From assembly GCF_006345805.1 (NCBI RefSeq), contig NC_043026.1, forward strand, positions 13,309,579-13,373,578: a stretch of 64,000 bases of DNA, given 5' to 3'. The stretch is from Octopus sinensis. Its lineage: Eukaryota. A model generated the notes under the pieces. It worked only from the letters and a program-made list of their open reading frames with translations, was not told the DNA's origin and ran no database searches. Position 1 is the stretch's first letter, and each line of letters starts with the position of its first letter. A program made the translations under genes and the position numbers. Positions 14,525-48,859 of this stretch are shown piece by piece.

Positions 14525-14715
14525 ATCGCTTCTCGGCCTTTTGGCTAAGATCAAAGTGTAGTATCTGTTCTTATCAGCTTAATATCTGATACGGTCCCTA
14601 TCTGGGACCATCGATATTAAACTGATTTTTGGAACGAGGCGAAGTGTTAGGGGCTTGCTCCGCCTTTGCCACGGGTTGGCCTGGTATTGCAGTGCTTCCA
14701 GGATTCAGCCCATCT
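14525..14715 (+). ncRNA. RNU2: U2 spliceosomal snRNA, copy 1
   Basis: ATCGCTTCTCGGCCTTTTGGCTAAGATCAAAGTGTAGTATCTG 5' end, branch-recognition GTAGTA, Sm site ATTTTTG, stem-loop IV TATTGCAGT. Confidence 0.97.
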
Positions 14716-15168
14716 CCCACCCGGGAGATACAAATAAATAATAATGTCAGATATGTTATTACACCCTCTCCCCTATATTTTTTTTTTCATCATCTCAGCG
14801 GGTTTTCCCGTTAGTTATCGTTGCTAAAAAGACCTTCCTCGCCGTCAGCGTTTGATCCCGCCTCAACCCCGTCGACTTCCATTTCCTTCCTCTTTACTTT
14901 CTCATTGCAAATCCCGTCATCGCTTTCGCACCACCACCTGCCAGCTTCTGTGCCTTTAGAGGAGACCCTTTTTACTTCTAAGCAATCGATTCGGGTCTCC
15001 ACTTTAAGTATACTGTTCTGTTTCTGTCTCTCTCCCTCACACCAGTCTCAGGTGCCCAGCACAGTTACGGTGAAACTGCATTTCCCCGTTACTACAACAA
15101 AGTGGAATAGCTGCAAACACAATGTGGGAGCACAAAACTAGTGACATTCCCTATCTATCAACCAAGTA

Positions 15169-16309
15169 GGGATCTTTTCTTTTTGATGGACGAATTTTCT
15201 AGTTATCTAAAAAATTTGAAACTTCGTATGCTGGTAGAATGTGTCAAAAGAAAACATTATTGTAAACAAAATTGTAATTCGTAACTTTAACGTAGTTTAA
15301 TTCTTCGAATTTTAACCAATGAAATCCCAGCATTGAGCTCAAACCATTTGCTGCGTTATCGATATTGATAAAGAAACATAGCAGACACATATTCAGATAC
15401 ATACACACGTACTCTTGCACACACACTCTCTGTCACTCTCTCTCTCTCAAACACATGCATATACATTTGCACAAGCACATAGTAATTAATATATAAGCGT
15501 ACACACACATACAAACGGAGATATACATACACACACATACGCACACAAGCATACATACACGTTCGTGTTTTGCCCCTTGCCGCAACAAATTTACACAAAA
15601 GGTAAATAAACCAGAAGGGGGGGGGGTCAATGTTTTATCGTTTCGGGGTCGATAAATTAAGTACCAATTATGCATTGGTGTCGAGGATTTTTTCCCCAGT
15701 TTATATCACAGCCTCCGACAAGCTGGGGCATCCTTTTATGAAAAAATATTTCGCAATTTTTTAGACCGCTTTAGGCGTATTATTCTTTTGTTTTTGTTGT
15801 TTCTGGCCCTTCAAAACCATGAGAGAAGCCTTTTCGGTAAAAAAAATAAAGAAAATATTCAAAATATATCGTTAATATTTTTATTGGGCGACGAAATTCA
15901 TCGATTTGAGAGATATAGCTGTTATTTCTAGCACATGTAGAAGACAGAAGAGAGAAAGGATGAATAAGACGTGTGTGTGTGTGAGTTTTTAGACGCAGCA
16001 AATGGTTTGAGCTCGAATGCTAGGATTTCATTGGTTAAAATTCGTAGAATTAAACTACGTTAAAGTTACGAATTACAATTTTGTTTACAATAATGTTTTC
16101 TTTTGACACATGCTACCAGTATGCGAAAAGATATTTCGTCTGAAAATCCGAGCATTTCGGCAATTAAACTACGTTAAACAAACAAATTACAATTTTCTCA
16201 AGAAAGCCAAGAGAAAAAAATGTTTTATTTTGACACATTCTACCAGTATACGAAGTTTTAAAGTGTTTAGTTAACTAGAAATTGTCTGCTGTTCAAAAGG
16301 AAAAGATCC
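15169..16309. mobile_element. Fold-back element with ~190-bp TIRs (GGATCTTTT family)
   Basis: 15169-15350 is the reverse complement of ~16000-16309 (with an internal duplication). Confidence 0.7.
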
Positions 16310-16671
16310 AAATAATCCCTTCCACTGAAGGCAAAAGGCCTTGAAATTTGTGGGGAGGGGACGAGTCGATTACATCGACCTCAGCGTTCCACTGGTACTA
16401 ACTATATTACTAGAAATAGCAGCTAACTCACCACCAACAAATGATTGCAACATTATTTGCACAATGAGAACTGAACTGTTAACTTCACCCCAGTCCAGTT
16501 TCACGCACGACGTTCACCCGACGCTATTGTAAATACTATTTTAAGAGTAATATGGTAAACAGTGATACGAAACCGAGTACCTGTTGGTTTGAAGCAAACT
16601 TGTTACTTTAACAAACGTACCAATCGCTACCTGGTCGCCCGATTTACAAGGTATAGCAATCAAAACAAGGC

Positions 16672-17100
16672 AGGGATCTTTTCCTTTTGAACGGCAGTTT
16701 TCAACACAATTTCTAGTTAACTAAAAAATTTTAAACTTCGTATACTGGTAGAATATGTTTATAAAACATCATTTTTTCTTGGCTTTATTGAGAAAATTCT
16801 ATATGTTGTAAGATATTTCGACTTTAATTTCGAGCACTTCGGCAATTTTAACCAATCGCTCACCTCCATTTGGGGTGAAAACATTCCGTGCTGTATGAAT
16901 ATGTCCCTCAGAAACAGATTGGGTTTATTTACATTTGCGAAGAAAAAAAAGATACCCTTCCCCACCCCTAACCCTAACCCTACCCCTAACCATAACCATA
17001 ACTCTAAACCTAACCCTAAAATAGATTGAAATGCAATAGATCGATACTAGGGTTATAATTATGGGTGACAATTTCATTTGACGCTGCTAGAAAAAAATCC
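16672..17100. mobile_element. GGATCTTTT-family TIR element fragment with a (CCCTAA)n-like tract
   Basis: Same terminus and body as 57425-57821; degenerate CCCTAA repeats at 16966-17020. Confidence 0.65.
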
Positions 17101-17131
17101 CATTTTCCGTAGCGGTGTCGCTGAAATAGGT

Positions 17132-17549
17132 ATTTGTTATTGGTCTATAAATATGATTTGAATGTAAGATGCACTAATTGAGGATTGATCGCTCTGGTCA
17201 GAGGTCAGTAAGGTTCATGCAGTGTGACCTGCTACCCGGCAGCCAGTCAGTAGCCAACACTGCTGATAAGTGATTCGCCTCGACCCCTCTCTTGGTGACG
17301 TCACTTCTCTTAGACGTTTACTTTATATAATGATAAGAACCTATATTTACCATTCAACATACAATATCTATATAAACTTACAAATAATTGATTTAAAGAT
17401 ATTAAAAATACTTTAAACTAGAAAATGTAAGGATTGAATATCTTGACAATATAACAGGTAATTTAATGTGATTGGAATAAATAATTTACACATCAGTGGG
17501 TGTAACATTAACTTGTGTGAATATAGTCTGTGGTAAAGAGGAAAAAATT
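17132..17549 (+). promoter_or_regulatory. Conserved U2 upstream region, copy 2
   Basis: Paralogue of 14120-14524; GTGACGTCAC at 17295-17304. Confidence 0.6.
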
Positions 17550-17740
17550 ATCGCTTCTCGGCCTTTTGGCTAAGATCAAAGTGTAGTATCTGTTCTTATC
17601 AGCTTAATATCTGATACGGTCCCTATTTGGGACCATCGATATTAAACTGATTTTTGGAACGAGGCGAAGTGTTAGGGGCTTGCTCCGCCTTTGCCACGGG
17701 TTGGCCTGGTATTGCAGTGCTTCCAGGATTCAGCCCATCT
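17550..17740 (+). ncRNA. RNU2: U2 spliceosomal snRNA, copy 2
   Basis: Identical to copy 1 except one C/T in the stem-loop IIb loop (ggtccctat[c/t]tgggacc). Confidence 0.97.
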
Positions 17741-18313
17741 CCCACCCGGGAGATACAAATAAATAATAATGTCAGATATATTATCACAGCCTCTTCCTTC
17801 TATTTTTTTTGTCATCTTGTCAGCGGGTTTTCCGGTAGTTGCTAGAAAGACCTTCCTCGCCGTCAGCAAGCAGTTCGCGTTCGATCTCGCTTCAACCCCG
17901 TCGACTTCCATTTCCTTCCTCTCTGCTTCCTCATTTCAAATCCCATCATCGCTTTCACACCACCACCTGCCAGCTTCGGTGCCTTTAGAGGGGACCCTTT
18001 TTTCTTCTAAGCAGAAGGGTTAGGGTTAGTGACAGGATGTTGTCTCAGTTTTAGACGCAGCAAATGATTTTAGCTCAATAGAGGCCATCGATCGGTTAAA
18101 GTTCGAAAAATTAAACTACGTTAAACTTACAAATTACAATTTTCTCAAGAAAGCCAAGAGAAAAAAATGTTTTATTTTGACACATTCTACTAGTATACGA
18201 AGTTTTAAAAGTGTTTAGTTAACTAGAAATTGTGTTGAAAACTGCCGTTCAAAAGGAAAAGATTATGGGATCTGGTAGCCACATTAATTAATTAAATTTT
18301 TAAATCAAAGTTC

Positions 18314-18731
18314 GGCAATCTTTCGTCTCTAGTAGACCTTTCCGTCGATTTCCGTAAAAATTTTTTTTTTTACATATGGGCTTGCGGGAACTTTTGAAGT
18401 AATGAGAGCGAAAGAGACTAAGAGAAAGCGATTTTATGACGAGGGAAGTTCTTTTGAAGTTACCGTGCATGGCAAGCATTGATGTACATGTGTGTGTGTG
18501 TGTTTGATGGGGTGTGGGAGGCAGACAGTATGTTGTGTAAGTGAAGTGCTTCTGTTAGTGTGTGTGAAGAGACAGAGTAATGTGTGAAAGAAAGAGATAA
18601 CTGAAATTTTTTACTCGGTGTATGTGTATATGTATGTATATTACTTCAAAAGTTCCCGCAAGCCCATATGTAAAAAAAAATATTTTTTTACGGAAATCGA
18701 CGGAAAGGTCTACTAGAGACGAAAGATCGCC
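18314..18731. mobile_element. Long-TIR MITE (GGCGATC family), copy 2
   Basis: TIRs and body match 7720-8105. Confidence 0.85.
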
Positions 18732-18949
18732 AATTAATTTTTTTTTTTTTTTATCTAAACACTTTGAAACTTCGGATACTGGTAGACTGTGACACATAGA
18801 GCAGGGTTTACTCTTAGCGTGGGATCTTTTTAATTAATGAATGTGGCTACCAAATTGAAAACATCCCAATTATGTCTGTACATACACGTGTTCTTGTGTT
18901 TTTATATATGTACGTGTCTATAATTATGCATATGTACTAAGATATGTCT

Positions 18950-18994
18950 GTGTGTGTGTGTGTGTATACATACGTATATGTATCAAAATATGTC

Positions 18995-19067
<73 letters not shown>

Positions 19068-19244
19068 GTATATATATATATATAACAATATGTATTAAAA
19101 CGTGTCTGTCTACGTGTGTATAAATATATATGTATATTTTTTAAATCATGTCTATGTGTATGTGTATATATATATATACACACATATATGTGTGTGTGTG
19201 TGTGTTTGTGTATGTATATATATGTATATATATATATATAATAC

Positions 19245-19278
<34 letters not shown>

Positions 19279-19330
19279 CATACGTATGTATGTATATATA
19301 TATATATATATACACATACACATAGACATG

Positions 19331-19363
<33 letters not shown>

Positions 19364-19372
19364 ATATATAAT
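18950..19372. repeat. (TA)n/(TG)n compound microsatellite
   Basis: Seen directly in the sequence. Confidence 0.9.
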
Positions 19373-19374
19373 TT

Positions 19375-19735
19375 TAATCCAAACGGGAAAACAAAAAAAC
19401 AACAACAATGGAACAATTACAGTATTATTATTAATAGGCGCTCAGGAAATGGAAGCAGGGAGGTATGACGTTTCGAGCGGAGCTCTTCGTCGGAAACATA
19501 AAGAAGGAAGAGAGAGGAAAGAAAGATCCCAAAGCGGGCAACAGGGATAGAGAAAAAAAACGACTGGTGTTTACGAGTTACACATGGTGAAAATAATTTA
19601 TTAAAACATTTTACCTTCGCCCATATAATAAAATAAATGTATGCATTTATGTACTTCACTAGCAGTATATTGGATTAATGATATCCCATAGTGGGTTACA
19701 CTCATAACCCCTATCTCACATTGTACTTATATATA
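19375..19735 (-). mobile_element. Penelope-like-element-derived repeat with a hammerhead-like core at 19465-19497
   Basis: Reverse complement ccgacga-a-gagc-tcc-gctc-gaaac-gtc followed by cctgagcgcc..taat as at 575-775. Confidence 0.5.
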
Positions 19736-19755
19736 TATATATGTATATATATATG

Positions 19756-19787
<32 letters not shown>

Positions 19788-19973
19788 CATATATATTATA
19801 TATATATATACATATATATATACATATATATATATATAAGTACAATGTGAGATAGGGGTTATGAGTGTAACCCACTATGGGATATCATTAATCCAATATA
19901 CTGCTAGTGAAGTACATAAATGCATACATTTATTTTATTATATGGGCGAAGGTAAAATGTTTTAATAAATTAT
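19593..19973. repeat. Perfect inverted repeat, ~140-bp arms around an (AT)n core
   Basis: 19593-19735 is the exact reverse complement of 19831-19973. Confidence 0.92.
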
Positions 19974-20224
19974 ATGAATTGGTATTATCTGGACGTAAAC
20001 ACACCAGCATCGGTTGTCAAGCAATGCTAGGGGGACAAACACAGACACACAAACATAAACGCACATACATATATACGACGGGCTTCTTTTTTAAGCTTCC
20101 ATCTACCAAATCCACTCACAAGGCTATAGTAGAAGACACTTGCCCAAGGTGCCACGCAGTGAGACTGAACCCGGAACCATGCGGTTGGTAAACAAGCTAC
20201 TTACCACACAGCCACTCCTGCGCC

Positions 20225-20312
<88 letters not shown>

Positions 20313-20326
20313 TTATATATATATAT

Positions 20327-20437
<111 letters not shown>

Positions 20438-20438
20438 T

Positions 20439-20728
20439 AAACAGAGAAACACAATTGAAAAAAGTTAAAGAGAAGAAAATCTGGAATGTTTTAATACAGG
20501 CGTAGGAGTGGATGTGTGGTAAAGTAGCTCGCTTACCAACCATATGTCTCTACTACTATAGACTTGGGCCGAATCCATTCGCAAGGCTTTGGTCGGCCCG
20601 AGTCTATAGTAGTAGAGACATATGGTTGGTAAGCGAGCTACTTTACCACACATCCACTCCTACGCCTGTATTTAAACATTCCAGATTTTCTTTCTCTTTA
20701 ACTCTTTATCAATTGTGTTCTCTGTTTT
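20439..20728. repeat. Fold-back inverted repeat of a SINE head plus its flank
   Basis: ~135-bp arms with a ~20-nt spacer, directly after a (TA)n tract. Confidence 0.9.
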
Positions 20729-20924
20729 GACCAAATTTCTAATTTAATTTTGTAAAACTAGATTGATAAAAACAAAAGGATTGTTGATCTGGGTGGAAAC
20801 GGGGTAGAATGATGGAAGACGGGTGGTGGCGACGTTGGAGATAATATAAACTGAACGTGAAAGAAGGAAAGTGGGGGCAGAGATATATTTATCCATATAT
20901 TATTTATAGGGTACAACTTAAGAA

Positions 20925-23110
20925 GAGTGGCCCAGGTGCGCGCACTAGTTAGTCGTGACTAGTCGATCCTTACTTTGTTTTTTGTGTTTTATTTACTTTG
21001 TTTGAAAAAAATTATTTACTTTGTATAAAAAAAATTTATTTATTTTGTGTTTTATTTACTTTGCTAGGGAGTCGTTTCTGGGATCGACTAGTCACGACTA
21101 GCTAACGCGGATGCGCGAGTCCGGGCACTGGGACCAATCTTATTAAATAGTACTTATTTATAGTCTGTATGAAATTGCTGACATGCGCATACATGCATAC
21201 ACTCCTCAACACACACACACACGCCCATTTCTTTAAATAAACACCACAGCGACTGTTGTCCGTCAGGTTTTCACGTTGTTTCAACGAACTCGGAGGAGGA
21301 CCCTGCTATCGAGAGTATTCGAACCCCGCAAGACATTCCTGAGACCAAAAAGACTTCAGGCTGAGATTGAACCCCAATTATTGGCTCAGGTAAATATTTC
21401 ATTGATGACTATTTTAATTAAAGGACAACTTTAGTAACCTATTTGCGTCGTTAACGACTCATTAGTACTTTTGAAACTTCACCGAGTCGTGTGAGGTGAT
21501 GTCTGTGAGGGCGCTTGGCTTTCCTAACGCCTTAGCTTCGCCATCAACCGCGGTAATTCTGCGAGCTTGGCTTGTCTCAGTAGATTCCATTCAACCTTGT
21601 AGTGTGTGACCTGTTGAAGTATTTGATGCTACAGTCGGTCTTTCACCATGGTGGCGATCTTTCGTCTCTAGTAGACCTTTCCGTCGATTTCCGTAAAAAC
21701 TTCTTTTTTTTTTACATATGGGCTTGCGGGAACTTTTGAAGTAATATACATACATATACACATACACCGAGTAAAAAATTTCAGTTATCTCTTTCTTTCA
21801 CAAATTACTCTGTCTCTTCACACACACTAACAGAAGCACTTCACTTACACAACCCCCTGTCTGTCTCCCACACCCCATCAAACACACACACACATGTACA
21901 TCAATGTTTCCCCTGGACGGTAACTTCAAAAGAACTTCCCTCGTCATACAATCGCTTTCTCTTAGTCTCTTTTGCTCTCATTACTTCAAAAGTTCCCGCA
22001 AGCCCATATGTTAAAAAAAAAAATTTTTTTGTACGGAAATCGACGGAAAGGTCTACTAGAGACGAAAGATTGCCCAAATGGTTTCAATACAGTTTTAGCG
22101 GAAAGATTTGGAAGAATTAGAAGAAAGTTCGGTACTACTTTAAATACAGAGGTACCGACGCATCTACCCAACTCTAACCCTAAAAAACATCGTGGTATTA
22201 CTAGCGAACAGTGGTCCCGGTGCGCGCACAAGCGTACTCGCGAATCCGCGCTAGCTAGTCATGACTAGTCGATCCTAAAACAACACCCTAGCAAAGTAAA
22301 TAAAACACTAAATAAATAATTTTTTTTTATACAAAGTAAATAACACAAAACACAAAGTAAGAAGGATCGACTACTCATGACTAGCTAGTGCGGATGCGCG
22401 AGTACGCGCACCGGGACCACTGTTCGCTAGTAGTACCAAACATCGTTACGTCGATGCATCGTAACCTCGATACTACTAGCGAACAGTGGTCCCGGTGCGC
22501 GCACTCGCGCTAGCTAGTCGTAAGTAGTCGATCCTACGACTTTTTAACCCTAACCCTAACCTTAGTTTATAAAAATAATTCATTTACTTAGTTTAAAAAA
22601 ATTATTTACTTTGTTCGAAAAATATTATTTAATTTTCTTTGATATGTATTCAGCCTTGAAATACAAACATACTCGCAAGTCGTTGTAGGATCGAGTGCGC
22701 GCACCGGGACCATTGTTCGCTAGTAGTACTCGGGACGTTAAACTTACAAATTACAATTTTGTTTTCAATTTTGTTTACAATAATGTTTTCTTTTGACACA
22801 TTCTACCAGTATACGAAGTTTCAAATTGTTTAGTTAACTAGAAAATTCCGTCCATCAAAAGGAAAAGATCCTAAATTTTTTTTCGTGTAAATAAAAGTCT
22901 ATGTTATCTTATGAATTCGCCAGCAAAATCTTAGGATCTAGTTTTTTCATTCGCAAAATCTTCAAGTACTTATTTAAGAGTGGTCCCGGTGCGCGCACCC
23001 GCGCTAGCTAGTCGATCCTTTGTGTTTTTGTGTTTTATTTACTTTGTTTTAAAAAAATTATTTATTTTGTGTTTTATTGACTTTGCTAGGTGGTCATTGT
23101 AGGATCGACT
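20925..23110. mobile_element. Cluster of CpG-rich TIR MITEs (GTGGTCCCGGTGCGCGCAC...GACTAGTCGATCCT): ~20927-21137, 22200-22435, 22470-22730, 22980-23110
   Basis: Each unit begins and ends with reverse-complementary blocks around an A/T-rich core. Confidence 0.7.
21653..22074. mobile_element. Long-TIR MITE (GGCGATC family), copy 3, inverted body
   Basis: TIRs match 7720-8105; internal sequence is in the opposite orientation. Confidence 0.85.
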
Positions 23111-23112
23111 AG

Positions 23113-23411
23113 TCTCTTTTGCCGAACCGCTAAGTTACGGGGACGTAAACACACCAGCATCGGTTGTCAAGCGATGTGGGGGGGGGGGTCAAACGCAGAT
23201 ACACAAACATATACACACACATACATATATATATACATACATACATATATACAACGGGCTTCTTTCAGTTTCCGCCTACCAAATCCACTCACAAGGCTTT
23301 GGTCGGCCCGAGGCTATAGCAGAAGACACTTGCCCAAGGTGCCACGCAGTGGGACTGAACCCGGAACCTTGAGGTTGGTAAACAAGCTACTTACCACACA
23401 GTCACTCCTAC
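23113..23411 (-). mobile_element. SINE family A, 3'-truncated
   Basis: Reverse complement of the family A consensus. Confidence 0.8.
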
Positions 23412-23754
23412 GTTCACTATCGTGTACTTAATCTCTTGAGGTGCGCACACTCGCCGTTCCATGCATTATCTTAGCTATTTTAGACCACGTTCAGATCATG
23501 AGACTAGCAATAGACAAATGACATGCGAATATTTTACATGCATAACACCAAGTTTTGAGTTGTACAATATGCAACCTATTATTTTTTTTAAGATTTATTG
23601 AGCAGAATAACTCGTGCATATCATATTAGGATAAATAGCTTCACCTTGTTCGTTTTCATAAACCGGTAGACGTAAATGTACGACGCTATGTTATTGTAAC
23701 GGTGAACGTAAATAGACGCGAGCTCGTTGGCACTTGTGTGTTTGTATGACCTCA

Positions 23755-24133
23755 TCTTTATATATAAAAGTAAGGTTGTGTGTCTGTCTACTCCGATTTA
23801 GATTCCTAACTACTCCCACATTTTGCGGTGCAGTTTAACCAAAACCGGGTATCTTATAGTCGTGATTCATATCGAGCCCTTCTGGGTATTAGCGCGCGTC
23901 TACGATGAGTCTACGATTTTAAAAATAATTTACCATAATTTTTTTCCATTTTAATGCATATTTTTTTAAAGTGAAGTAACTCTCTAAAAATGTCTACGAT
24001 GAGTCAACGATTTAAAAAAAAAAATTACCATCATATTTTTTCCATTTTTAATGCATTTTTTGCTATAACTCTCTAAAAATGCTTTATACTTATTTCCCTT
24101 ACAAACCCGAGTAACGCTGGGCGATACTGCTAG
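23755..24133 (+). mobile_element. Non-autonomous Helitron with an internal duplication
   Basis: A|TC start, cccgagtaacgctggg hairpin, CTAG|T end; body matches 11657-11913. Confidence 0.85.
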
Positions 24134-24235
24134 TTAGATAAAAAAAAAAAACCCGGAGCAGTGTCTCGAATGCTTCGGTAATACCGGCGTCAAGGGGTTA
24201 ATGAAGTTTGAATATTATTGTAGAGGTGTGTTTAA

Positions 24236-24804
24236 CCCTTTCGATACCAAACTGGCTGAAACTGGCTCTGGCTCTGTAGTACAAATGTCTTGTTTTCATA
24301 AGTTTTGAATTAAAATCTTCCTCAAAACCTTAGTCACAATTTATGTTCTTAACAATATTTTACTAAATTCTTTGTTATATTTAAAACTAATTGAAAGAAA
24401 CATCTCAACAGAAATATGGTAACAAAAGGGTTAAGAAGAAAAATAATCAGCAGAAGACATGAGAGAAAGAGACCTCAATGTGGTCACTCTATATGCTAGA
24501 AATGATAGCCTAAATTTCCTTCAATCCACACCCTCTCAACTGCTTCTAATGTCCATCTGCCCAAATGTAGAAGTGTTTTTAACCCTTTCAATACCAACCC
24601 GGTTGAAACCACCTCTGGCTCTGTAGTACAAATATCTTGTTTTCATAAGTTTTGAATTAAAAATCTTCCACCAAACCTTAGTCACAATTTATGTTCCTAA
24701 CTCTAGCTTAATGATAACTAAGTTATTTTACTAAATTCTTTGTTATATTTAAAGTAATTGGAAGAAACACAGAGCATCTCAAAATAAATACAGTAACGAA
24801 AGGG
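24236..24804 (+). mobile_element. piggyBac-type MITE pair (24236-24430, 24583-24804) with the same spacer as 3737-4327
   Basis: TTAA/CCCTTT termini; ~150-bp spacer matches 3961-4102. Confidence 0.8.
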
Positions 24805-24825
24805 TTAAATGTTAATTTGACAACC

Positions 24826-25140
24826 TGATGTGCCGGTGGCACGTAAAAAGCACCATCCGTTCGTGGCCGTTTGCCAGCCTCGCCTGGCCCCGTGCCGGTG
24901 GCACGTAAAAAGCACCATCCATCCGTTTGCTAGCGCCGTCTGGCACCTGTGCGGGTGGCACGTAAAAAGCACCCACTACACTCACGGAGTGGTTGGCGTT
25001 AGGAAGGGCATCCAGCTGTAGAAACATTGCCAGATCAGACTGGGCCTGATGCAGCCTTCTGGCTTCACAGACCCCAGTTGGACCGTCCAACCCATGCTAG
25101 CATGGAAAGCGGATGCTAAATGATGATGATGATGATGATG
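24826..25140 (+). mobile_element. RTE-tail SINE/retroposon
   Basis: gtgccggtggcacgtaaaaagcac...ggttggcgttaggaagggcatcc...tgatgatgatg tail. Confidence 0.8.
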
Positions 25141-25255
25141 CTGACAGAAATGCATGTATTTTGGTTGTGTGTTTAAAACAATGAAGTGAACATCTTTAAA
25201 ATTTAAAATTTTCACAGAGCTGTACGTTTTCTTTGTATTTCATTATAGATTCACT

Positions 25256-28200
25256 ATGGAAGGCAATACAGGAAATACTTCAAGAATACTTAAGCCTCAG
25301 AAAACAAGTTTTTGTGATGAAGGAGGAGTCTACAATCAAAAGTGCAGATATTGGAGAGATGATATTTTAGAGACGGAAACCTCACAGAACCAATCTTCGT
25401 ATCAGCCAACAACGAAACAAGACAGACATAAAGAAGACTGTGAAAAGTGTAAAACAATTGGAAGACGAGTTGTTTTGGACAAATGCATGCATTATACAAG
25501 ATTCAATGCGTATGAAGACAAAATTAACATGTTGGTGAATTCTCGGGAAAAAATCTGTGCCATTTTAAAAAGTGTAGGGTTGGATAAAAGCAATTTTCTA
25601 AAAGATTTTACACAGAGAATTGAAATTTTGCAGAAAAACGTTAAGAAATGTGATTACAGTCAAGATTTTATTATCTTTGGACAACTTGAATGTTTTCTGG
25701 AACAATATGTAAAGAAAAATGTTTTGCAACACAAACACAGAAGCATTGAGGCGCCAAAAATAACTGACAAATTCCGACCTCTTTGTCCAGTTGTGACCAG
25801 AGAAGCAATGTTCACTGAATCTGATGAAGGCTTCAGCAACATTATATCCAATATTGTCGTTATACAGGGTGGAGTTGTGACATATTCCCGTCATTATATG
25901 ACAGTGTGTTGTGTGAAAATGAACGGTAACAGAAATGAAGTCCACTGCCCATCTTCTGTCACCGATTTTACCAGAATCGGTAAAGACACTGTACTGGCCA
26001 CCCTTCCATTTAGGAAAATTATTCTAATTATCAGCCCCTCAAGTCTTAAAATTCAAACGCTTCAATTAGGCTTTTACAGGGTTTCGTACTTAGAACATTC
26101 TACAGTTATAGGTGTAGAAATGTTCGGTAAGACTGTAAATTTTATTGATTGGGAAGATAGTAAAATCACAAAGCAATTCCTCGTCAAAGAGGCACCATCA
26201 GCTATTGTTGTAGGTCCACAGAATAAGCTGTTGCTATCATTTTCAAATACCAACATAGTTGCTTGTTATAACCTAGATGGCCAGCAGATATTTGAAGTGT
26301 GTACCCATTCTCTGGAACTTCCAACCAACATAACTGCATACCAAAACCATTTTTATGTCCTCCAGGGACATATTATTTATAAGCTTTCAGGCACTGGTGG
26401 TATGTCAAAGAAAGAAATTGGCGTGAAAGGTCGGAATATCTCTGTTGACTCGAGTACAATTTTCTTGGTTGATTATTTTGGTATTCCTCATGCTGTAAGA
26501 ACTACTGAAGACTTTTGGCCCAGGTTGTCTTACTCCAACCAGCTACATACTCCCACTTTCTACAACCAGATTTATGTTGAGGATTATTATGATATTACAA
26601 ATATTCTACCTATGTCAACATCTTCTATGTTAATAATCTCCAGGAATAAGAAAGCCATATTATTCACTGACATTGGAGGAAAAATTCGCCAGAATTATTC
26701 ATCTTTTCCCTTCTTTCCTTCTGTCTTTTGTAGATTGAACTCAAAAACATTTTTGATTTTTTACTCTGAAATTAAAGCACTTCAGTATGTCACATGTCCT
26801 GAACTAACCAAAATCCCTTTAATTAAGGTCCACGCTGAATACATTAAAATATGTCATATTGTATCCAATAAGTGTTTAGCTGTGACCACCACTGAAAACA
26901 AAGTGGAAGTACATATCATGTTGATTAAGGAGGACCAAGTTGACATTATGGAAAGAATTTCTCTGGGTCATGAAAATGTCACCATTGCTGCAACTCCTAT
27001 TAATTTTGTGGTCGTAGATGGAAAGAAAAATAAACTGGTGTTTTATTCCACATGTGGTGAAGAACTTTTTGAAAAATCCCTTCCATGCTACGGCTACCCT
27101 CATCACATCTACTCTGACAATGTTTATTACTATGTTGTGTTCAAGAGAGAGTCTGTTGTAATATGTTACAATATATTTGGTGAAATTAAATGGCAGTGGA
27201 AACTACCCCTAACTGCCCCCTCTCACATTGCTGTCTCCCAAGGAACAGTTTATGCAGTGGACCTTGCACTCAATAGGGTCCTGCTTTTCAAATGTCATGA
27301 CGGGTCCAGCTGTAGTTTACGCATCAAAAATCCTTATATCAGAAATCTAAATATACAGCTCAAAGAAAAGGAAGAGAAACTTCTCATTGCCAAAATATGT
27401 CATCTCCCAAACGGACAGTTGGTGGTGTCCGACATAAATAATGATTGCTTGTTTTACATTTCTAAAGAAGGAGACATTGTGTCTAGATTATCTCTGCCAT
27501 CCGCAGCTACAGATATATGCCAATGGGACTGTAATCAAATAGGTATCACATTGCCCCTGGAGAGACAATTAAGGGTTATTGAAAACTTATCAAAGGCAGT
27601 TAGAACTGTATCATTTACCCACCCTTATGTACGAGTATGTAAGCTGGGTAACGGTCAAATGGTTTCTTATTGCGATAAACCATCTCATTTAGATATTTTA
27701 AACATTAAAAATTATAATCAAGTCGAAATCATTCATAGAATTAATATCCCTTTTGTAGTGAAATCATTATCAATAGACAAGGAAACACTAAAGCTATTGA
27801 TTGTTACTAGGAAAAAAGTATTTCAGTACAACGGTAGTGGTGGTAGTGGCAGTAACAGTAAGATGGTCCCTAGTGTTTTACTGTCGCATATGAAACCCTC
27901 CCTCGATATCTTTGGTGGATGTATTGATAAATTGTTTGTTTATCTAATTGACAACAGCCGTATGTTTGCTATGACTGATCATAACCTGGTGGTGAGAGAT
28001 CACATTACTAATAAACTGGTAAACATGTACGCCGACCTGGTTGATGTATTTTCCAGAAACATCTGTGTCGGTGAAATGTTGTCTTCGACTTTATATCTCG
28101 AGGATCTGACAGTTTCTGAAGAAGCTAGACATATTGATGTTGTCCCTCCAGGTCTTCGAAACAGGGAACCGATGAGAATTGACAATTCAATCATTACTGA

Positions 28201-30661
28201 AAATAACCTGATTGCAGTATATGACAGTAATAATAAAAACATTATGATATTCACATTTGACGGTCAACTTCTGGATTCTGTCAAACTGAATGTCAGCTAC
28301 TTAATCGATATGTGTCAATGGCAGTCAAACACATTGGCTATTATGACTGGTGGTTCTGATGACGATGTTGATGATGATGACAACGATGATGATAGTGGTG
28401 ACGATAATGACAATGATGATGATAGTGGTGAAGATGATGACAATGATGGTGAAGATGATGACAACGATGATGATGCTGTTGAACACCAACTGTTGACATT
28501 AAAAGTGGAATTTCCACTGTCATTTGTAAATTACCAGACAAGCAGTAAATACTGCTGCATTGCTTCTTTGTCAAACAACCAACTGGTGTGTAGTAAATGG
28601 CGAGACGAATGTAATTTGTATGTTGTCGATATTGACGAAATACATTTGACGGTCAATGAAAATAAACAAATAGACATACCTGAGATATTAACGAGATACA
28701 GTCATGGGGGTAGTAATTATATTAACGAGATCTATAATGTTGTAATTAATGCTAATGATGCCATCATTGTCCATAATAAAAGATTCATCATTTTCTTCAA
28801 CAGTGATGGTCAGTATTTACATTCAGTTAGAACCTACCGAGATTATTTTGGGTTTTATAACGTGACACTCGATGACGGTTTTTTGTTCATTCATGGTTGG
28901 TGGGAAAGATATTTTAGTGACTACAGTGAATATAAAAACATTGTGTGTTTGACCCAGAATGGGGAATACAACAGAATATTTTTGAATAAAAGAATTTATA
29001 AAGATAAGGTAGATTTCTCCTGTATAAACTGTAAAGGGCCGAGGTTTATTGGAAGCTACAGGTATAATGATAGTAACAAATTGTATGTTGAAGGTTTGTT
29101 TAAGGCTAATCGGGAAAGGTTCGACGTCTGTCGTTTACAGACAGACAATTGCCCTGTTCAAGTAAAAGATCTTGATATCTCCGATGATGGACAAATAGTT
29201 GTATGTGAAAAAGCCAATAATGGAAATGTTAAAATATTTGATAGAAATAGGCAATTGCTATGTCACAGAGATATTGGAAGTTTAGTGGGTGGTGTGTGTT
29301 TTACAGGAGAAAGAGACATAATTATCACAGTTCCTGACAGACAAGAAATATTTCAACTGAAGCAACAAGATTTGGTGAATCATAAAGTTTGGGAAAGTCA
29401 AGTACCTTATGGTGTAATATGGAGAAAAGTGGGGAATATTTACTGGTGTGTACATATTAACTTGAGTGAATGTCATTGGTTAAAGATCGATGGAGACCAA
29501 TTGGAGGTTCTAGAATCTATATCATTATCAAAGCTTGATTCTGGTCTTCGTTTCCCTTCTATTTCATCTCAGACGAACAACGAAATGTACAGTAGTGAAT
29601 TAATTAAATTGAAATACAGGGGAGAAGATGGAGAAGAAAGAGGTAGATCAGGTGAAATAGATGGTAAAGGTAGATTTATGGTTAGATGTGGTAATTACAT
29701 AGCGGAGAGTATGTCAGGGTTTGATGAAATATCTGTGAGGAAACTGCCATATAGAACAGCAATGGTCCCGCTTTCCATTCCTTCATTCGAGGAACCTGTT
29801 GATTATGATATTGAGGATGCCAAGGACTACAACAGTAAACTAATTAAGTTAGATGAGAAGGTGAGTGTGTTTATGTTTAGAAACACTGTCACGGTAATCA
29901 CCGCAACAGGTGATATACTGCAACATAAACAACTACCACAACCTCAACCACCACTAGACATATGTTGGTGGACAGATGAATGTTTCATAGTTGCCTTTGG
30001 TGAACAGCTGATGTTCTTTGAAAGGGATCTCTGTCGTTTAAAAACCATCAATACTAAGAAATACTACAACAGGATTTATAAACACAGCGACAATCAACTT
30101 GTGTGTGGTGGTCATGAGATTGGAGACAGAACTAAAGAGGGAAGATGCTGTTACAACTACTATGTAGATATAGTTGATATTGATGGTGGGACATGTAAAT
30201 ATAATTGTGGGGTGTGTTCTGGAGTGGATGTGCTGAAGAAAGAGCGAGGGGTATTGGTGTGTGATATAGCAGTGACGTCTGGTGGGGATATTGTTATTGT
30301 GAAATGGAAGGATTGGCAGAGGTGGAGTGGTGGTCACTATTTAATCTGTTGGTACCGGGATCAGTTGTTGGTCAGGAGTATAAAACTACAGCCAGGTTTT
30401 GATAGGGATTATATATACAGACCATGTCTAAACATACATGGCGAATATGTTTATATAACAGACATATATAACAATATTTACCAGATACCTGGAGATATTC
30501 CACACGAAACGGCTGAAAGTATAAAACAATATTTATTCCTTGATGGTCAAGATAATGAAGTCTTCACAGTTCTTGGGTTTGGTATTTCAGACAATTCCTT
30601 CTTCATTTTTGGAATTATTCCAGGACGTCAGTCCTTTGCTTTCTTCCATTATGACAAATAA
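25256..30661 (+). CDS. Intronless 1801-aa protein: Cys-containing/helical N-terminus plus six tandem NHL-like beta-propeller modules (TRIM-NHL-related)
   Basis: 5.4-kb uninterrupted ORF, strong Kozak context (cactATGG), acceptor tttcattatag at 25247-48. Blade motifs recur at aa ~194, 445, 709, 973, 1301 and 1527 (e.g. ICHLPNGQLVVSD, LDISDDGQIVVCE, DICQWDCNQIGITLP, DICWWTDECFIVAF). Confidence 0.85.
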   Translation: MEGNTGNTSRILKPQKTSFCDEGGVYNQKCRYWRDDILETETSQNQSSYQPTTKQDRHKEDCEKCKTIGRRVVLDKCMHYTRFNAYEDKINMLVNSREKICAILKSVGLDKSNFLKDFTQRIEILQKNVKKCDYSQDFIIFGQLECFLEQYVKKNVLQHKHRSIEAPKITDKFRPLCPVVTREAMFTESDEGFSNIISNIVVIQGGVVTYSRHYMTVCCVKMNGNRNEVHCPSSVTDFTRIGKDTVLATLPFRKIILIISPSSLKIQTLQLGFYRVSYLEHSTVIGVEMFGKTVNFIDWEDSKITKQFLVKEAPSAIVVGPQNKLLLSFSNTNIVACYNLDGQQIFEVCTHSLELPTNITAYQNHFYVLQGHIIYKLSGTGGMSKKEIGVKGRNISVDSSTIFLVDYFGIPHAVRTTEDFWPRLSYSNQLHTPTFYNQIYVEDYYDITNILPMSTSSMLIISRNKKAILFTDIGGKIRQNYSSFPFFPSVFCRLNSKTFLIFYSEIKALQYVTCPELTKIPLIKVHAEYIKICHIVSNKCLAVTTTENKVEVHIMLIKEDQVDIMERISLGHENVTIAATPINFVVVDGKKNKLVFYSTCGEELFEKSLPCYGYPHHIYSDNVYYYVVFKRESVVICYNIFGEIKWQWKLPLTAPSHIAVSQGTVYAVDLALNRVLLFKCHDGSSCSLRIKNPYIRNLNIQLKEKEEKLLIAKICHLPNGQLVVSDINNDCLFYISKEGDIVSRLSLPSAATDICQWDCNQIGITLPLERQLRVIENLSKAVRTVSFTHPYVRVCKLGNGQMVSYCDKPSHLDILNIKNYNQVEIIHRINIPFVVKSLSIDKETLKLLIVTRKKVFQYNGSGGSGSNSKMVPSVLLSHMKPSLDIFGGCIDKLFVYLIDNSRMFAMTDHNLVVRDHITNKLVNMYADLVDVFSRNICVGEMLSSTLYLEDLTVSEEARHIDVVPPGLRNREPMRIDNSIITENNLIAVYDSNNKNIMIFTFDGQLLDSVKLNVSYLIDMCQWQSNTLAIMTGGSDDDVDDDDNDDDSGDDNDNDDDSGEDDDNDGEDDDNDDDAVEHQLLTLKVEFPLSFVNYQTSSKYCCIASLSNNQLVCSKWRDECNLYVVDIDEIHLTVNENKQIDIPEILTRYSHGGSNYINEIYNVVINANDAIIVHNKRFIIFFNSDGQYLHSVRTYRDYFGFYNVTLDDGFLFIHGWWERYFSDYSEYKNIVCLTQNGEYNRIFLNKRIYKDKVDFSCINCKGPRFIGSYRYNDSNKLYVEGLFKANRERFDVCRLQTDNCPVQVKDLDISDDGQIVVCEKANNGNVKIFDRNRQLLCHRDIGSLVGGVCFTGERDIIITVPDRQEIFQLKQQDLVNHKVWESQVPYGVIWRKVGNIYWCVHINLSECHWLKIDGDQLEVLESISLSKLDSGLRFPSISSQTNNEMYSSELIKLKYRGEDGEERGRSGEIDGKGRFMVRCGNYIAESMSGFDEISVRKLPYRTAMVPLSIPSFEEPVDYDIEDAKDYNSKLIKLDEKVSVFMFRNTVTVITATGDILQHKQLPQPQPPLDICWWTDECFIVAFGEQLMFFERDLCRLKTINTKKYYNRIYKHSDNQLVCGGHEIGDRTKEGRCCYNYYVDIVDIDGGTCKYNCGVCSGVDVLKKERGVLVCDIAVTSGGDIVIVKWKDWQRWSGGHYLICWYRDQLLVRSIKLQPGFDRDYIYRPCLNIHGEYVYITDIYNNIYQIPGDIPHETAESIKQYLFLDGQDNEVFTVLGFGISDNSFFIFGIIPGRQSFAFFHYDK

Positions 30662-30734
30662 ATATGTTTCATAAATATTAACAGTTTGTTATTGTTATTA
30701 TTACTGTTACAAAATTTGGTTTACTCACAAAACA

Positions 30735-31320
30735 GTAGCGACCTGGCAGAAATGTTAGCACGCTGGGCGAAATGCTTAGCAGTATTTCGTCTGTCACTAT
30801 GTTCTGAGTTCAAATTCCGCCGAGGTCGACTTTGCTTTTCATCCATTCGGGGTCGATTAAATAAGTACCAGTTTTTGTTTGTCCCCTCTGTGTTTAGACC
30901 CTTGTGGGTAGTAAAGAAATAGGTATTTCGACTGCCGCTACATTCTGAGTTGAAATTCCGCCGAGGTCGACTTGGCTTTCCATCCTTTAGGGGTCGAGTA
31001 AATAAGTACCAGTTACGCACTGGGGTTGATACAATCGACTTAATCCATTTGTCTGTCCTTGTTTGTCCCCTCTGTGTTTAGCCCCTTGTGGGTAGTAAAG
31101 AAATAGGTATTTCGACTGCCGCTACGTTCTGAGTTCAAATTCCGCCGAGGTCAACTTTGCCTTTCATTCTTTCGAGGTCGATTAAATAAGTACCAATTAC
31201 GCACTGGGGTCGGTATAATTGACTTAATCCGTTTGTCTGTCCTTGTTTAGCCCGTTGTGGGTAGTAAAGAAATAGGTATTTCGTCTGCTGCTACGTTCTG
31301 AGGTCAACTTTGCCTATCAT
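30735..31320 (+). mobile_element. SINE family B, tandem trimer
   Basis: Three successive gagttcaaattccgccgaggtc...gtagtaaagaaataggtatttcg units. Confidence 0.85.
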
Positions 31321-31333
31321 CCCAACATAATTT

Positions 31334-31620
<287 letters not shown>

Positions 31621-31959
31621 GGAAAAAATGCAGATTATATGTTATTTGTCGTTTCGTTCTAATGGGTGATAGACAACTCAAATGAAGGCATTGTTATCGT
31701 TTTACGTGTTTATTTGCTTTACATGTTACACGAACTGTCCGACATTTAGCGTAGTAATACTTATATACTTTAGACACAGGTCGTACTGTTTACTAATAAA
31801 ATAGTGCCAAAAGTGGGGATGTATTCTACACACGTATACCTACATATACACATAGATATGAATGTGTAACATTATATTCAAGGATTTACGAAATACACAG
31901 TGTAGTGGACAATTTTACCCTTGCATAAATCACACCAGAGACATGAATTAAATGTCCCA

Positions 31960-32230
31960 AGATACATCCAGAAACATTTTTAATTATATCAAGATTTCAC
32001 AAAAGAATGGCTTTTTTCCTCTGTATGTTTTTTGCTGTGCCTTTTTAACAGGCAAAAGAAACCCCACACATTTGACAGTGGAAGGGTCTTTCTCCCATAT
32101 GAATCATTTTGTGATCAACAAGCCAAGAATTAACAGAGAATGATTTTCCACAGATTTCACATTGCCAGACAGCTTAGAAAATATTTTTCATTTTTAATCT
32201 CGTATATAGTACGCACTGGGGATTTTGACC
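31960..32230 (-). pseudogene. Second partial duplicate of the same ZNF 3' end, with internal deletions
   Basis: gatacatccagaaacatttttaattatatcaagatttcac...ggcaaaagaaacccccacacat repeated. Confidence 0.75.
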
Positions 32231-32380
32231 TTTAAATTTTGGGGTAAAAATGCAGATTATATTCGAGGATTTACGGTATATGAAATACACAGTGTAGTGG
32301 ACAATTTTACCCTTGCATAAATCACACCTGAGACATGAATTAAATGTCCCAAGAAACATCCAGAAACATTTTTAATTATA

Positions 32381-33715
32381 TCAAGATTTCACAGAATGGA
32401 TTTTTTCCCCTGTATGTTTTTTGCTGTGCCTTTTTAACTTAGCCTTACAGGCAAAAGAAACCCCACACATTTCACAGTGGAAGGGTCTTTCCCCAGTATG
32501 TTCTCTTTTATGAATGACCAGAATAGAATTATTACTGAATGATTTTCCACATATTTCACAGTGGCAGGGTTTCTCTCCTGTGTGAACCCTTTTATGTCTG
32601 GTTAAATCACTTTTATTCACAAACGACTTCTCACATATGTCACAATGATGAGCTTTCTCGTCAGCGTGTATTTTTTTGTGTGTCAATAACGCACTGTTAT
32701 TTGTAAAAGTTTTCCCACATATCTCGCAGTGGAACGGCCTTTCTCCTGTATGAATCGTTTTGTGATCAACAAGCCGAGAATTACAAAAGAATGATTTTCC
32801 GCAGGTTTCACATTGATAAGGCTTTTCTCCCGTGTGTACTCTTATGTGTTTCGTTAATTCGCTGTTAACTGCGAAATGCTTCCCACACGTTTCACAGCGG
32901 AAAGGTTTTTCCCCGGTGTGGGTCGTTTCGTGATACGCAAGACGCGAACGAACAGAGAAGAACTTACCACAGATTTCACAACGATAGGGTTTCTCCCCAG
33001 TGTGGACCCTGTTGTGACAGACAAGATGTGAAATCTGAACGAAGGATTTTCCGCAAATTCCACAGCGATACGGCTTTTCCGCAGTATGTGTCCGTTTGTG
33101 ATTTATAAGACTAGAATTAACCGAGAAGGATTTTCCACAAATTTCACAGTGGTAAGGTTTCTCCTGAGTGTGGATTTTTTGGTGCCTTGCCAAGATACCG
33201 TTAGTTGAAAAATATTTACCACAGGCGTTGCAATGGTAGGGTTTTTCCCCAGTGTGAGTACGTACGTGAGTAACCAGACTCGATTTCTGACTAAAATATT
33301 TTCCGCATATTTCACACTGAAACGGCTTTTCCCCAGAGTGTATTCTCTTGTGACTTGTTAAGTAACTATTATCGGAAAATGATTTTCCGCATATTTCACA
33401 GTGGTAAGGTTTATTTCCACTGTGGATACGCATATGTATAACAAGATGGCTATTCTGGCTGAATGATTTTCCACACTGTTCACAACGAAACGGTTTTTCT
33501 CCCGTGTGTACCCTTTTGTGTTGCGTTAAGTTACTGGATTTGCCAAATAATTTCCCACAAATTTCACAGCGAAATTTTGTGTCCAATGAATTTTGTTCAG
33601 TAGATACTTCACTGCCTAAAATCTTATCATTACTATAATTCTGCGTTACTTTATCCAAATTGGTCAAAACAGTCGAGTCGGGAATATCCAAGGGTTTAAC
33701 GTCTTCCATATTCAT
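32381..33715 (-). CDS. C2H2 zinc-finger protein, 14 fingers, MNMEDVKPL leader, 444 aa
   Basis: Fourteen C2H2 units with TGEKP-type linkers. Confidence 0.93.
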   Translation of the reverse strand: MNMEDVKPLDIPDSTVLTNLDKVTQNYSNDKILGSEVSTEQNSLDTKFRCEICGKLFGKSSNLTQHKRVHTGEKPFRCEQCGKSFSQNSHLVIHMRIHSGNKPYHCEICGKSFSDNSYLTSHKRIHSGEKPFQCEICGKYFSQKSSLVTHVRTHTGEKPYHCNACGKYFSTNGILARHQKIHTQEKPYHCEICGKSFSVNSSLINHKRTHTAEKPYRCGICGKSFVQISHLVCHNRVHTGEKPYRCEICGKFFSVRSRLAYHETTHTGEKPFRCETCGKHFAVNSELTKHIRVHTGEKPYQCETCGKSFFCNSRLVDHKTIHTGERPFHCEICGKTFTNNSALLTHKKIHADEKAHHCDICEKSFVNKSDLTRHKRVHTGEKPCHCEICGKSFSNNSILVIHKREHTGERPFHCEMCGVSFACKAKLKRHSKKHTGEKIHSVKS

Positions 33716-48700: not shown

Positions 48701-48845
48701 ACTGCACAGACCCAACAGGAGTGATACCGGAATGGATATGGCCAGTCTGTAGGAAGCAGCCCAGGATAGAACTGACTGGAGGACACTGATCCAACGAGTG
48801 ACCGAGAGTCGACTTCGACTGAGCGGATAGAGAGAGATGACAGAC
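48700..48845 (+). mobile_element. RTE/BovB-like LINE 3' tail fragment
   Basis: EAAQDRTDWRTLIQRVTESRLRLSG* resembles the RTE C-terminus. Confidence 0.45.
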
Positions 48846-48859
48846 CAACAACATCAGCA

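Follow-up and report, generated by a model that had tools for sequence, protein, structure and literature searches.

In TRIM E3 ligases the NHL propeller is known as a ligand-binding module that occurs singly at the C-terminus and binds RNA (Brat, LIN-41) or proteins. In TRIM2, TRIM3, TRIM71 and Brat, RNA or peptides are bound by the top face of the propeller. Expansions of B-box genes have been reported in bivalves (PMC8382680). We analysed a stretch of 64,000 nucleotides of Octopus sinensis DNA (the window) that contains a single-exon open reading frame (ORF) of 1,801 codons. An earlier note made from the letters alone (the sequence-only reading) had described its product as six tandem NHL-like propellers behind a ~175-aa N-terminus. 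We favour reading the ORF as a functional O. sinensis host gene from an octopod-only family of six-propeller proteins, with a product that would act as a multivalent scaffold; for this explanation as a whole we estimate a probability of roughly 0.6. That the family is a real and functional octopod gene family of tandem propellers is, taken by itself, very likely.

The open reading frame and its six modules

The coordinates, ATG, length and open frame of the ORF (Table 1) are exactly as first described. It coincides with a called gene in the O. sinensis assembly GCA_006345805.1 (CM016888.1:13,334,834-13,340,239), and the two translations are identical. The second-longest ORF of the 64-kb window has 444 aa, and by our own arithmetic a frame this long would occur by chance with a probability of about 1e-55 (stop frequency about 0.068 per codon at about 37% GC). 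The frame is open, over 1,795-1,889 codons, at each of the eight family loci examined. Ratios of nonsynonymous to synonymous substitution (omega) were estimated by the Nei-Gojobori method. Between the window copy and the locus of its nearest available paralogue (P0007), omega was 0.40 at a synonymous divergence (dS) of 0.52; the per-module values, which had been proposed as a check, lay between 0.27 and 0.55, indicating purifying selection in every module. Over seven deep lineages 170 positions are invariant, spread through all six modules and none in the N-terminus. We regard the ORF as a real gene because it equals a gene call, all eight loci are open, omega is below 1 and these positions are invariant. 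The protein is kept by purifying selection.

The module starts proposed by the sequence-only reading, near aa 194, 445, 709, 973, 1301 and 1527 (modules M1 to M6), are sound, as judged from profile-profile alignments that run in register. The repeats are too diverged for BLAST and secure at the profile level only; a self-blastp search returned no internal repeat even at an expect value (E) of 10. With ten clean sequences the inter-module hhalign matches were weak and consistently in register. The final comparison used a 17-sequence alignment spanning all deep lineages and linked M3 to M6 (94.8%, E 5e-8), M4 to M6 (94.5%, E 7e-8, 188 columns), M2 to M4 (94.1%, E 1.3e-7, 178 columns), M2 to M3 (94.0%, E 1.5e-7), M3 to M4 (88.9%, E 2.4e-6), M2 to M6 (88.1%, E 3e-6), M1 to M2 (80.8%, E 1.3e-5) and M4 to M5 (58.5%, E 1e-4). 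Each of these alignments has the same start offset in both modules. The strings quoted earlier as a recurring blade signature share alignment columns, 39-44 residues into each module, when the first 62 residues are aligned. At the profile level, the six modules are homologous to each other. An early hhalign run on an alignment (A1) with chimeric or fragmentary O. vulgaris models gave spurious matches (M1-M6 at E 1.8e-26, and the N-terminus with M3 and M4), which disappeared with clean full-length sequences and were discarded.

AlphaFold2 (AF2) was run on two halves of the protein, aa 1-960 and aa 941-1801, each with a 25-sequence paralogue alignment. M1 (aa 195-420) and M2 (aa 438-680) were modelled as all-beta domains of 23 strands, both with a predicted local distance difference test score (pLDDT) of 75-85. 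M4 (aa 975-1280) has about 24 strands at pLDDT 75-90, and M6 (aa 1500-1801) reached 70-90, the hairpin strands of its blades 3-4 being unusually long. When the models were compared with the PDB by Foldseek, the top matches were solely multi-propeller proteins, with best E values of 1e-21 (N-terminal half) and 2e-13 (C-terminal half). AlphaFold followed by Foldseek, the structural check suggested with the sequence-only reading, returned tandem beta-propellers, with M1, M2, M4 and M6 confident. The predicted structures confirm a tandem-propeller fold for at least four modules; M3 is a probable propeller and M5 probably a divergent one.

Some of the structural evidence speaks against a count of six. 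M3 (aa 711-915) was modelled with moderate confidence only (pLDDT 55-60), the structure of M5 (aa 1280-1499) was not confident (pLDDT below 50), and strand counts, not coordinates, are the basis for ring closure and blade number. M5 is moreover the shortest module (226 aa), with a loop rich in Gly, Arg and Glu near aa 1455-1472, and about 70 of its residues align confidently to an NHL propeller. On this view the number of closed propellers could be below six, with M5, and perhaps M3 too, forming a degenerate or partial blade array or part of a larger composite domain with M6. We consider this rather unlikely: M5 runs colinear with the propeller of the outgroup for 209 columns, its conservation matches that of the other modules (0.63, with 26 invariant positions and omega 0.55-0.70), and the shallow AF2 alignment of 25 close paralogues can alone explain the low confidence. 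M3 has in its blades 1-2 the most conserved segment of the family (..NGQLVVSD..DCL.YIS..G.IVS.LSLPS.ATDIC.WD.N.IG.TLPL..QL..), and a conserved, possibly helical linker follows its propeller at aa 919-959. The earlier claim of six propellers holds with confidence for four modules and probably for M3, and is weakest at M5, where only the first 70 or so residues align confidently; exactly six closed propellers remain the count that we think fairly likely.

Propeller type and ancestry

Direct comparison with known domains counts against an NHL assignment. No Pfam domain was found above threshold on the window protein. Its match to Pfam NHL (PF01436) scored 8.3 bits (E 3.4, aa 1305-1328 in M5) against a cut-off of 20, and that of the best family member (P0045) scored 18.5 bits, also below the cut-off. 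A single-sequence search of the PDB gave no match. The M3 profile matched TRIM2 NHL chains only, at E 0.7, and the top PDB match of the whole-protein profile was the TRIM71 NHL domain at positions 996-1017 (M4), at E 0.35. These sub-threshold direct matches consistently point to NHL. With the direct threshold failed, the assignment rests on a transitive link.

We searched for relatives with a word-indexed search and with an exhaustive hmmsearch, in which a profile of aa 1-1190 was run against 1.84 billion representative proteins. Outside the family the exhaustive search matched small proteins only, at E 6e-5 to 8e-4 and in every case on M3 blades 1-3. P0064 (KAK3588083.1, from the freshwater mussel Potamilus streckersoni) has a RING and a B-box, P0063 has two B-boxes and a Pfam NHL match of 22.2 bits, P0065 follows, in its contig, an ORF that encodes a RING, and P0061 is a fragment with an NHL match at E 0.006. 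M3 matched the C-terminal ~250 aa of this B-box-NHL family at 97.9-98.3% (E 4e-13 to 1.8e-14 in two independent hhalign runs). The other modules matched the family in the order M5 (95.7%, E 9e-9, colinear as noted above), M4 (95.2%, E 2.8e-8, 203 columns), M6 (92.3%, E 5.5e-7), M1 (79.8%, E 1.5e-5) and M2 (53.8%, E 1.3e-4). The B-box-NHL profile in turn matched the solved NHL domains of TRIM3 (9e-9), Brat (1.5e-7), Thin (2.8e-7), TRIM2 (3e-7) and, more weakly, TRIM71, and its match to the YWTD domain of the LDL receptor (7e-4) was about five orders weaker. Because the modules are linked to the B-box-NHL family and this family to TRIM3, Brat and TRIM2, we call the modules likely NHL-type propellers. 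The relation to mollusc B-box/NHL families to which the sequence-only reading had pointed is borne out by the same two steps.

The B-box-NHL group comprises more than 120 clusters, and B-box and NHL Pfam domains are recorded on many of its members. The nearest relatives with one propeller, P0074-P0145 and the loci L008/L009 (8001-9326), encode two B-boxes plus NHL in single-exon proteins of ~410-440 aa (ERZ25073280, ERZ25073293). About 70 listed clusters are 77-91% identical to P0063, and remoter members of ~570-590 aa bring the group to its full size.

WD40 or LDL receptor class B (YWTD) propellers, in a relative of IFT-A, Utp21 and DDB1 or of LRP4 and LRP2, are the alternative to the NHL type. 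The best Foldseek matches were the WD40 tandems of IFT-A, the YWTD tandems of LRP4 and LRP2, Utp21 and DDB1; Pfam ANAPC4_WD40 matched at aa 702-759 with E 0.004, and one paralogue matched WDR90_beta-prop_4th at 4.5e-4. Foldseek with multi-domain models could not separate NHL from WD40 or YWTD, multi-propeller targets being dominant, which is a further point against our assignment. Its matches share 7-12% identity, however, as expected for any multi-propeller query, and the ANAPC4_WD40 match scored 17.7 bits, below the cut-off of 22.9. The 23-24 strands per module fit six blades, not seven, and EGF spacers, a signal peptide and a Pfam match to Ldl_recept_b were all lacking. Since profile homology leads to the B-box-NHL proteins and thence to TRIM3, Brat and TRIM2, with the LDL receptor so much weaker, we judge a WD40 or YWTD identity improbable.

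The N-terminal region (aa 1-193) was modelled by AF2 as disordered over aa 1-60 and 158-194, with four helices in aa 61-157 at pLDDT 46-68. No coiled-coil homology was detected in these helices (a coiled-coil-specific test was not part of the analysis). The region is basic (pI 8.7), the sole part that is consistently so across the family, and it is the least conserved part (conservation 0.44, no invariant residue). A Pfam scan of aa 1-193 gave no match. No B-box was matched in scans of the whole protein and of this region, and no RING in scans of the whole protein, of this region and of 26 family members. By hhalign, the N-terminal profile matched none of the propeller modules and matched the B-box region of the B-box-NHL relatives with 0.1% probability. 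The CxxC (C62-E-K-C65) reported earlier together with a helical segment does exist in the window copy, and helices are predicted with moderate confidence, but the CxxC is absent from the paralogue consensus. A B-box remnant was rejected on the copy-specific CxxC, the empty Pfam scan and the profile result, and the description of the protein as B-box-degenerate has to be dropped. The absence of a signal peptide and of a transmembrane segment, also part of that description, agrees with the hydropathy profile, in which the Kyte-Doolittle mean stays below 1.6 over every 19 residues, and with a hydrophilic N-terminus in which no signal peptide is apparent. Because transmembrane segment, signal peptide and Pfam domain are all lacking, we read the protein as non-enzymatic and apparently cytosolic.

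Family, gene structure and surroundings

The word-indexed search returned 36-37 clusters (about 40), all from O. sinensis, O. vulgaris or O. bimaculoides, and the exhaustive search gave 32 matches at E <1e-3. Among the 1.84 billion representatives the six-module architecture was found in octopods only, in the three Octopus species and Argonauta; no six-propeller orthologue appeared outside cephalopods, where wide annotation of such orthologues had been named by the sequence-only reading as a finding that would count against it. Family proteins have ~1,660-1,925 aa. All are annotated as 'uncharacterized' or 'hypothetical', and precomputed Pfam domains occur only on chimeric models (zinc-finger or DUF4371 fusions). 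Several public models appear faulty, namely P0002 (2,526 aa), P0008 (ZNF fusion), P0016 (DUF4371 fusion) and P0007, and some are chimeric with neighbouring genes. The two annotated internal 'introns' of P0007 are unnecessary, as its locus (L001, 10001-15412) has an open frame of 1,804 codons.

At least four deep lineages were distinguished; two are 1:1:1 orthologue groups and one is a rapidly duplicating cluster. Each of the conserved two forms a single 90% cluster with members in the three Octopus species. In one, P0039 shares 99.5% identity with P0066 and 91.3% with P0067; in the other, P0045 shares 99.6% with P0069 and 93.9% with P0070. Identity between the two lineages is 29.5%, and they lie on large chromosomes in three species. 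A further lineage consists of P0028 and P0038 (84.9%). Argonauta hians has two proteins, of 1,913 and 1,925 aa, that are 38% identical to the window protein, and all deep-lineage members are colinear over ~1,600-1,700 positions. Because Argonauta and the deep lineages align colinearly, the full architecture is, on these alignments, older than the divergence, within Incirrata, of Argonautidae and Octopus. The expanded branch, which includes the window copy, lies mainly on O. vulgaris OX597841.1 and O. sinensis CM016888.1 and is interleaved with C2H2 zinc-finger genes.

The window copy stands apart within this family. Its nearest relative is 63.5% identical, and it lacks an orthologue above 64% in annotated O. 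vulgaris, where other members form sinensis-vulgaris pairs of 96-99.8%; this weighs against our explanation. Its M4 carries a 42-residue acidic tract (D7 repeat family), in a loop of blade 2 that is disordered in the AF2 model; the tract occurs only in the window copy and is a gap or missing in all paralogues. These features, with an omega of ~0.4-0.5 that is above that of typical conserved genes, would suit a duplicate that is decaying or has lost its function, a young pseudogene still without a stop codon. We hold this to be quite improbable, since dS values of 0.45-0.53 to the nearest relatives make the lineage old and a 5.4-kb frame free of constraint would not have stayed open over that time; omega is below 0.56 in every module, and the acidic expansion keeps the frame and falls in a loop of predicted disorder. 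The window copy stands as an old lineage on its own, and its counterpart in O. vulgaris has been lost or lacks annotation.

Over all pairs omega ranged from 0.41 to 0.88, with the highest values in the youngest O. vulgaris duplicates (dS 0.09-0.19). In these young copies constraint is strongest on M1 (0.35) and weakest on the N-terminus and M4-M6 (0.70-0.79). We do not claim positive selection: the 40-codon windows with values above 1, near aa 47-86, 558-598, 755-815, 1329-1369 and 1464-1503, rest on few substitutions.

A multi-copy family of long single-exon coding sequences (CDSs) in a repeat-rich region, with high omega among young copies and one O. vulgaris model fused to a transposase-like DUF4371 domain, might also be the ORF of a mobile or selfish element (a transposon, a virus-derived gene or a retrocopy family). 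No inverted or direct terminal repeats bracket the ORF, and Pfam found no transposase, reverse transcriptase, integrase or capsid domain. Similarity to the L001 paralogue on the same chromosome is confined to window positions 25144-30706, that is, from 112 nt upstream to 45 nt downstream of the CDS; the rest that the two loci share is dispersed repeat. The putative splice acceptor is conserved, the domain fusions look like chimeric gene models, and two stable 1:1:1 orthologue lineages persist at 91-99.6% identity in three species. We rejected the transposon reading on the lack of flanking repeats, the CDS-bound similarity, the conserved acceptor and the stable orthologues, and regard a mobile origin as highly improbable.

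The sequence-only reading had called the gene intronless, which holds for the CDS and is too strong for the gene. Similarity between paralogues begins upstream of the ATG, and the acceptor motif tttcYttRtatttcWttaYAG|ATTCACT-ATG is kept in six of eight paralogue loci. In the O. vulgaris model P0003 the first two codons come from an exon ~17.5 kb upstream. The putative acceptor, conserved 7 nt ahead of the ATG, makes it very probable that the single-exon CDS belongs to a gene with a 5' (non-coding) exon. The N-terminal helical region (aa 1-160) occurs in two divergent versions, one in P0009, P0011 and P0013 and the other in P0001 and P0003-P0007; the upstream DNA differs too, P0009 and P0013 being without the acceptor motif. 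The two versions could be alternative first coding exons or the result of an exon swap. Directly upstream of the ORF, at 24829-25138, lies an element resembling a short interspersed element (SINE) with three copies of 'GTGCCGGTGGCACGTAAAAAGCACC'. At 21985-23756 of the L001 paralogue locus the same unit, 'GTGCCGGTGGCACGTAAAAAGCACC', is repeated in a long tandem array, one copy every ~63 nt.

The window otherwise is typical octopus DNA, with C2H2 ORFs, PIF1/Helitron fragments, SINE-like repeats, microsatellites and U2 small nuclear RNA (snRNA) genes (Table 1). C2H2 zinc-finger arrays are a hallmark of cephalopod genome evolution, and the giant gene lies inside such an array, as does its L001 paralogue. 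Most of the six zinc-finger ORFs share the N-terminal leader 'M(N)MEDVKPL.IPNSTV.TNLD'. The ORF at 53963-55105 begins with TTG, its first fingers are disrupted, and it appears degenerate. The location of the expanded branch fits the reported co-localisation of cephalopod C2H2 genes on few chromosomes (PMC12513265). The two U2 genes, ~3 kb apart, look like a tandem unit upstream of the giant gene, and the frame-shifted PIF1 fragments probably derive from a decayed Helitron-type element. The O. sinensis annotation holds a 1,956-aa multi-exon model on the minus strand (L011 1-18460, window ~15256-33715) that spans the giant ORF. The ORF would lie in an intron of this model, which probably chains neighbouring zinc-finger exons.

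Table 1. Features of the window, with positions counted from its first nucleotide.
Feature	Position	Strand	Evidence or remark
Single-exon CDS, 1,801 codons plus stop	25256..30661	+	ATG start, no internal stop
N-terminal region, aa 1-193	25256..25834	+	AF2, Pfam, hhalign, conservation
M1, aa 194-444, predicted six-bladed-type beta-propeller	25835..26587	+	AF2, hhalign
M2, aa 445-708, predicted six-bladed-type beta-propeller	26588..27379	+	AF2, hhalign
M3, aa 709-972, probable propeller	27380..28171	+	AF2 moderate, hhalign strongest
M4, aa 973-1300, predicted six-bladed-type propeller with acidic loop	28172..29155	+	AF2, hhalign
M5, aa 1301-1526, NHL-like blades 1-2 clear	29156..29833	+	hhalign, low AF2
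M6, aa 1527-1801, predicted propeller	29834..30658	+	AF2, hhalign
GAT/GAC-rich in-frame trinucleotide expansion, 42-residue Asp/Asn/Gly/Ser tract (aa 1032-1073)	28349..28474	+	
Upstream segment conserved among paralogues	25144..25255	+	Paralogue DNA similarity starts at 25144
Polypyrimidine tract	about 25227-25246	+	Read from sequence, inside conserved upstream segment
AG, putative 3' splice acceptor of large coding exon	25247-25248	+	7 nt before ATG
C2H2 zinc-finger ORF, single-exon	4754-5869	-	
C2H2 zinc-finger ORF, single-exon	32381-33715	-	
C2H2 zinc-finger ORF, single-exon	40535-41830	-	
C2H2 zinc-finger ORF, single-exon	44375-45622	+	
C2H2 zinc-finger ORF, single-exon	53963-55105	-	
C2H2 zinc-finger ORF, single-exon	60098-60754	+	
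U2 snRNA gene, full-length	14525-14718	+	Rfam RF00004, ~187 bits, model 1-192 of 192
U2 snRNA gene, full-length	17550-17743	+	Rfam RF00004, ~187 bits, model 1-192 of 192
PIF1-like helicase fragments, frame-shifted	9839-10734	+	Pfam PIF1 E 2.6e-30, Pif1_2B E 2.7e-12
ORF	48427-48891	-	No Pfam match; by eye resembles C-terminus of mariner-type transposase
ORF, 203 aa	51082-51693	+	No Pfam match

Proposed role and comparison with known systems

We propose, as homology suggests, that the propellers derive from the one that the expanded molluscan RING/B-box plus NHL proteins carry at their C-terminus. The E3 and B-box parts would have been lost and the propeller multiplied sixfold before Argonauta and Octopus diverged. 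A protein without catalytic, RING, signal or membrane element would most probably be a non-enzymatic multivalent scaffold in the cytoplasm or nucleus. Each propeller could offer one binding face, and six faces on a chain would allow avidity or combinatorial recognition; the basic helical N-terminus may serve self-association or the recruitment of partners. By analogy with the NHL propellers of TRIM2, TRIM3, TRIM71 and Brat we lean towards such a multivalent binder. The two slowly evolving 1:1:1 lineages suggest a core cellular role, and the weakly constrained birth-and-death cluster suggests a diversifying recognition role, a pattern typical of recognition modules that follow rapidly changing targets, for instance pathogens, mobile elements or RNAs.

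A role in immunity or in surveillance of transposable elements is doubtful as matters stand. A more specific form of it, equally speculative, makes the RING-less six-propeller proteins a new class of intracellular octopod pattern-recognition or restriction factors whose propeller faces diversify against viruses, transposable-element products or edited RNAs. The fast-duplicating copies would then have been co-amplified with the C2H2 arrays, in analogy to the expansions of TRIM5/PRY-SPRY or NLR genes, and the two conserved lineages would keep an ancestral housekeeping role, possibly RNA regulation.

Three further points bear against our explanation. The omega values of up to 0.88 in the youngest copies could reflect relaxed constraint rather than adaptive diversification. 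The whole case, transcription, protein, ligand and localisation included, is drawn from sequence and predicted structure. With per-module charge taken as a proxy for an RNA-binding face, net charges were mixed and not conserved and no module was consistently basic; there is no general basic signature, and charge does not speak in general for RNA binding.

A literature search returned no description of tandem NHL propellers or of the LOC identifiers of the family, and the general literature on octopus gene families was likewise silent. The sequence-only reading did not recognise the architecture as described, and we found it in octopods only and in no paper searched. The sequences are already public as uncharacterized proteins, and fold and ancestry are known; undescribed in the papers searched are the six NHL-type propellers without the RBCC part (RING, B-box, coiled coil), the octopod restriction and the pattern of expansion. 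Domain databases are blind to the family, whose members are 'uncharacterized' and without a Pfam domain, and cephalopod gene-expansion surveys now overlook it; it would be worth adding to domain and orthology resources. It offers a tractable example of a lineage-specific giant protein built through domain loss and internal multiplication, and it holds both strictly conserved and explosively duplicating branches, inside C2H2 arrays. In a field where molecular handles are very scarce, it is also a candidate factor in RNA regulation or innate immunity specific to octopus.

Among described proteins, LRP4, LRP5/6 and LRP2 resemble the octopus protein in carrying several six-bladed (YWTD) propellers on one chain for multivalent ligand binding. 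They are extracellular, however, and have a signal peptide, a transmembrane segment, EGF spacers and the YWTD motif, none of which occurs in the octopus protein. WD40 scaffolds (IFT-A, Utp21, DDB1, WDR90) are closer in being intracellular and non-enzymatic with two to four consecutive propellers, and they gave the best Foldseek E values; they are seven-bladed, ancient and universal in eukaryotes, whereas the octopus family has ~24-strand propellers of probable NHL type, six in a row, and is octopod-only. Canonical TRIM-NHL proteins (TRIM2, TRIM3, TRIM71/LIN-41, Brat, Thin) are cytoplasmic and use a six-bladed NHL domain as a platform for RNA or protein, and the octopus modules are linked to them transitively. 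The octopus protein differs from them in having no tripartite motif, six propellers instead of one and scores below the Pfam NHL threshold. The molluscan RING/B-box-NHL proteins have one propeller in 410-590 aa with a RING and/or one or two B-boxes, against ~1,800 aa, six propellers and neither of these domains in octopus. It is their propeller to which each octopus module is homologous, with a shared blade 1-2 signature (..NG.lv..D..N..i......G.......LP..P.DIc.......v.vTlP...ql..i), and the two groups are alike in their single-exon CDSs and lineage-specific expansions.

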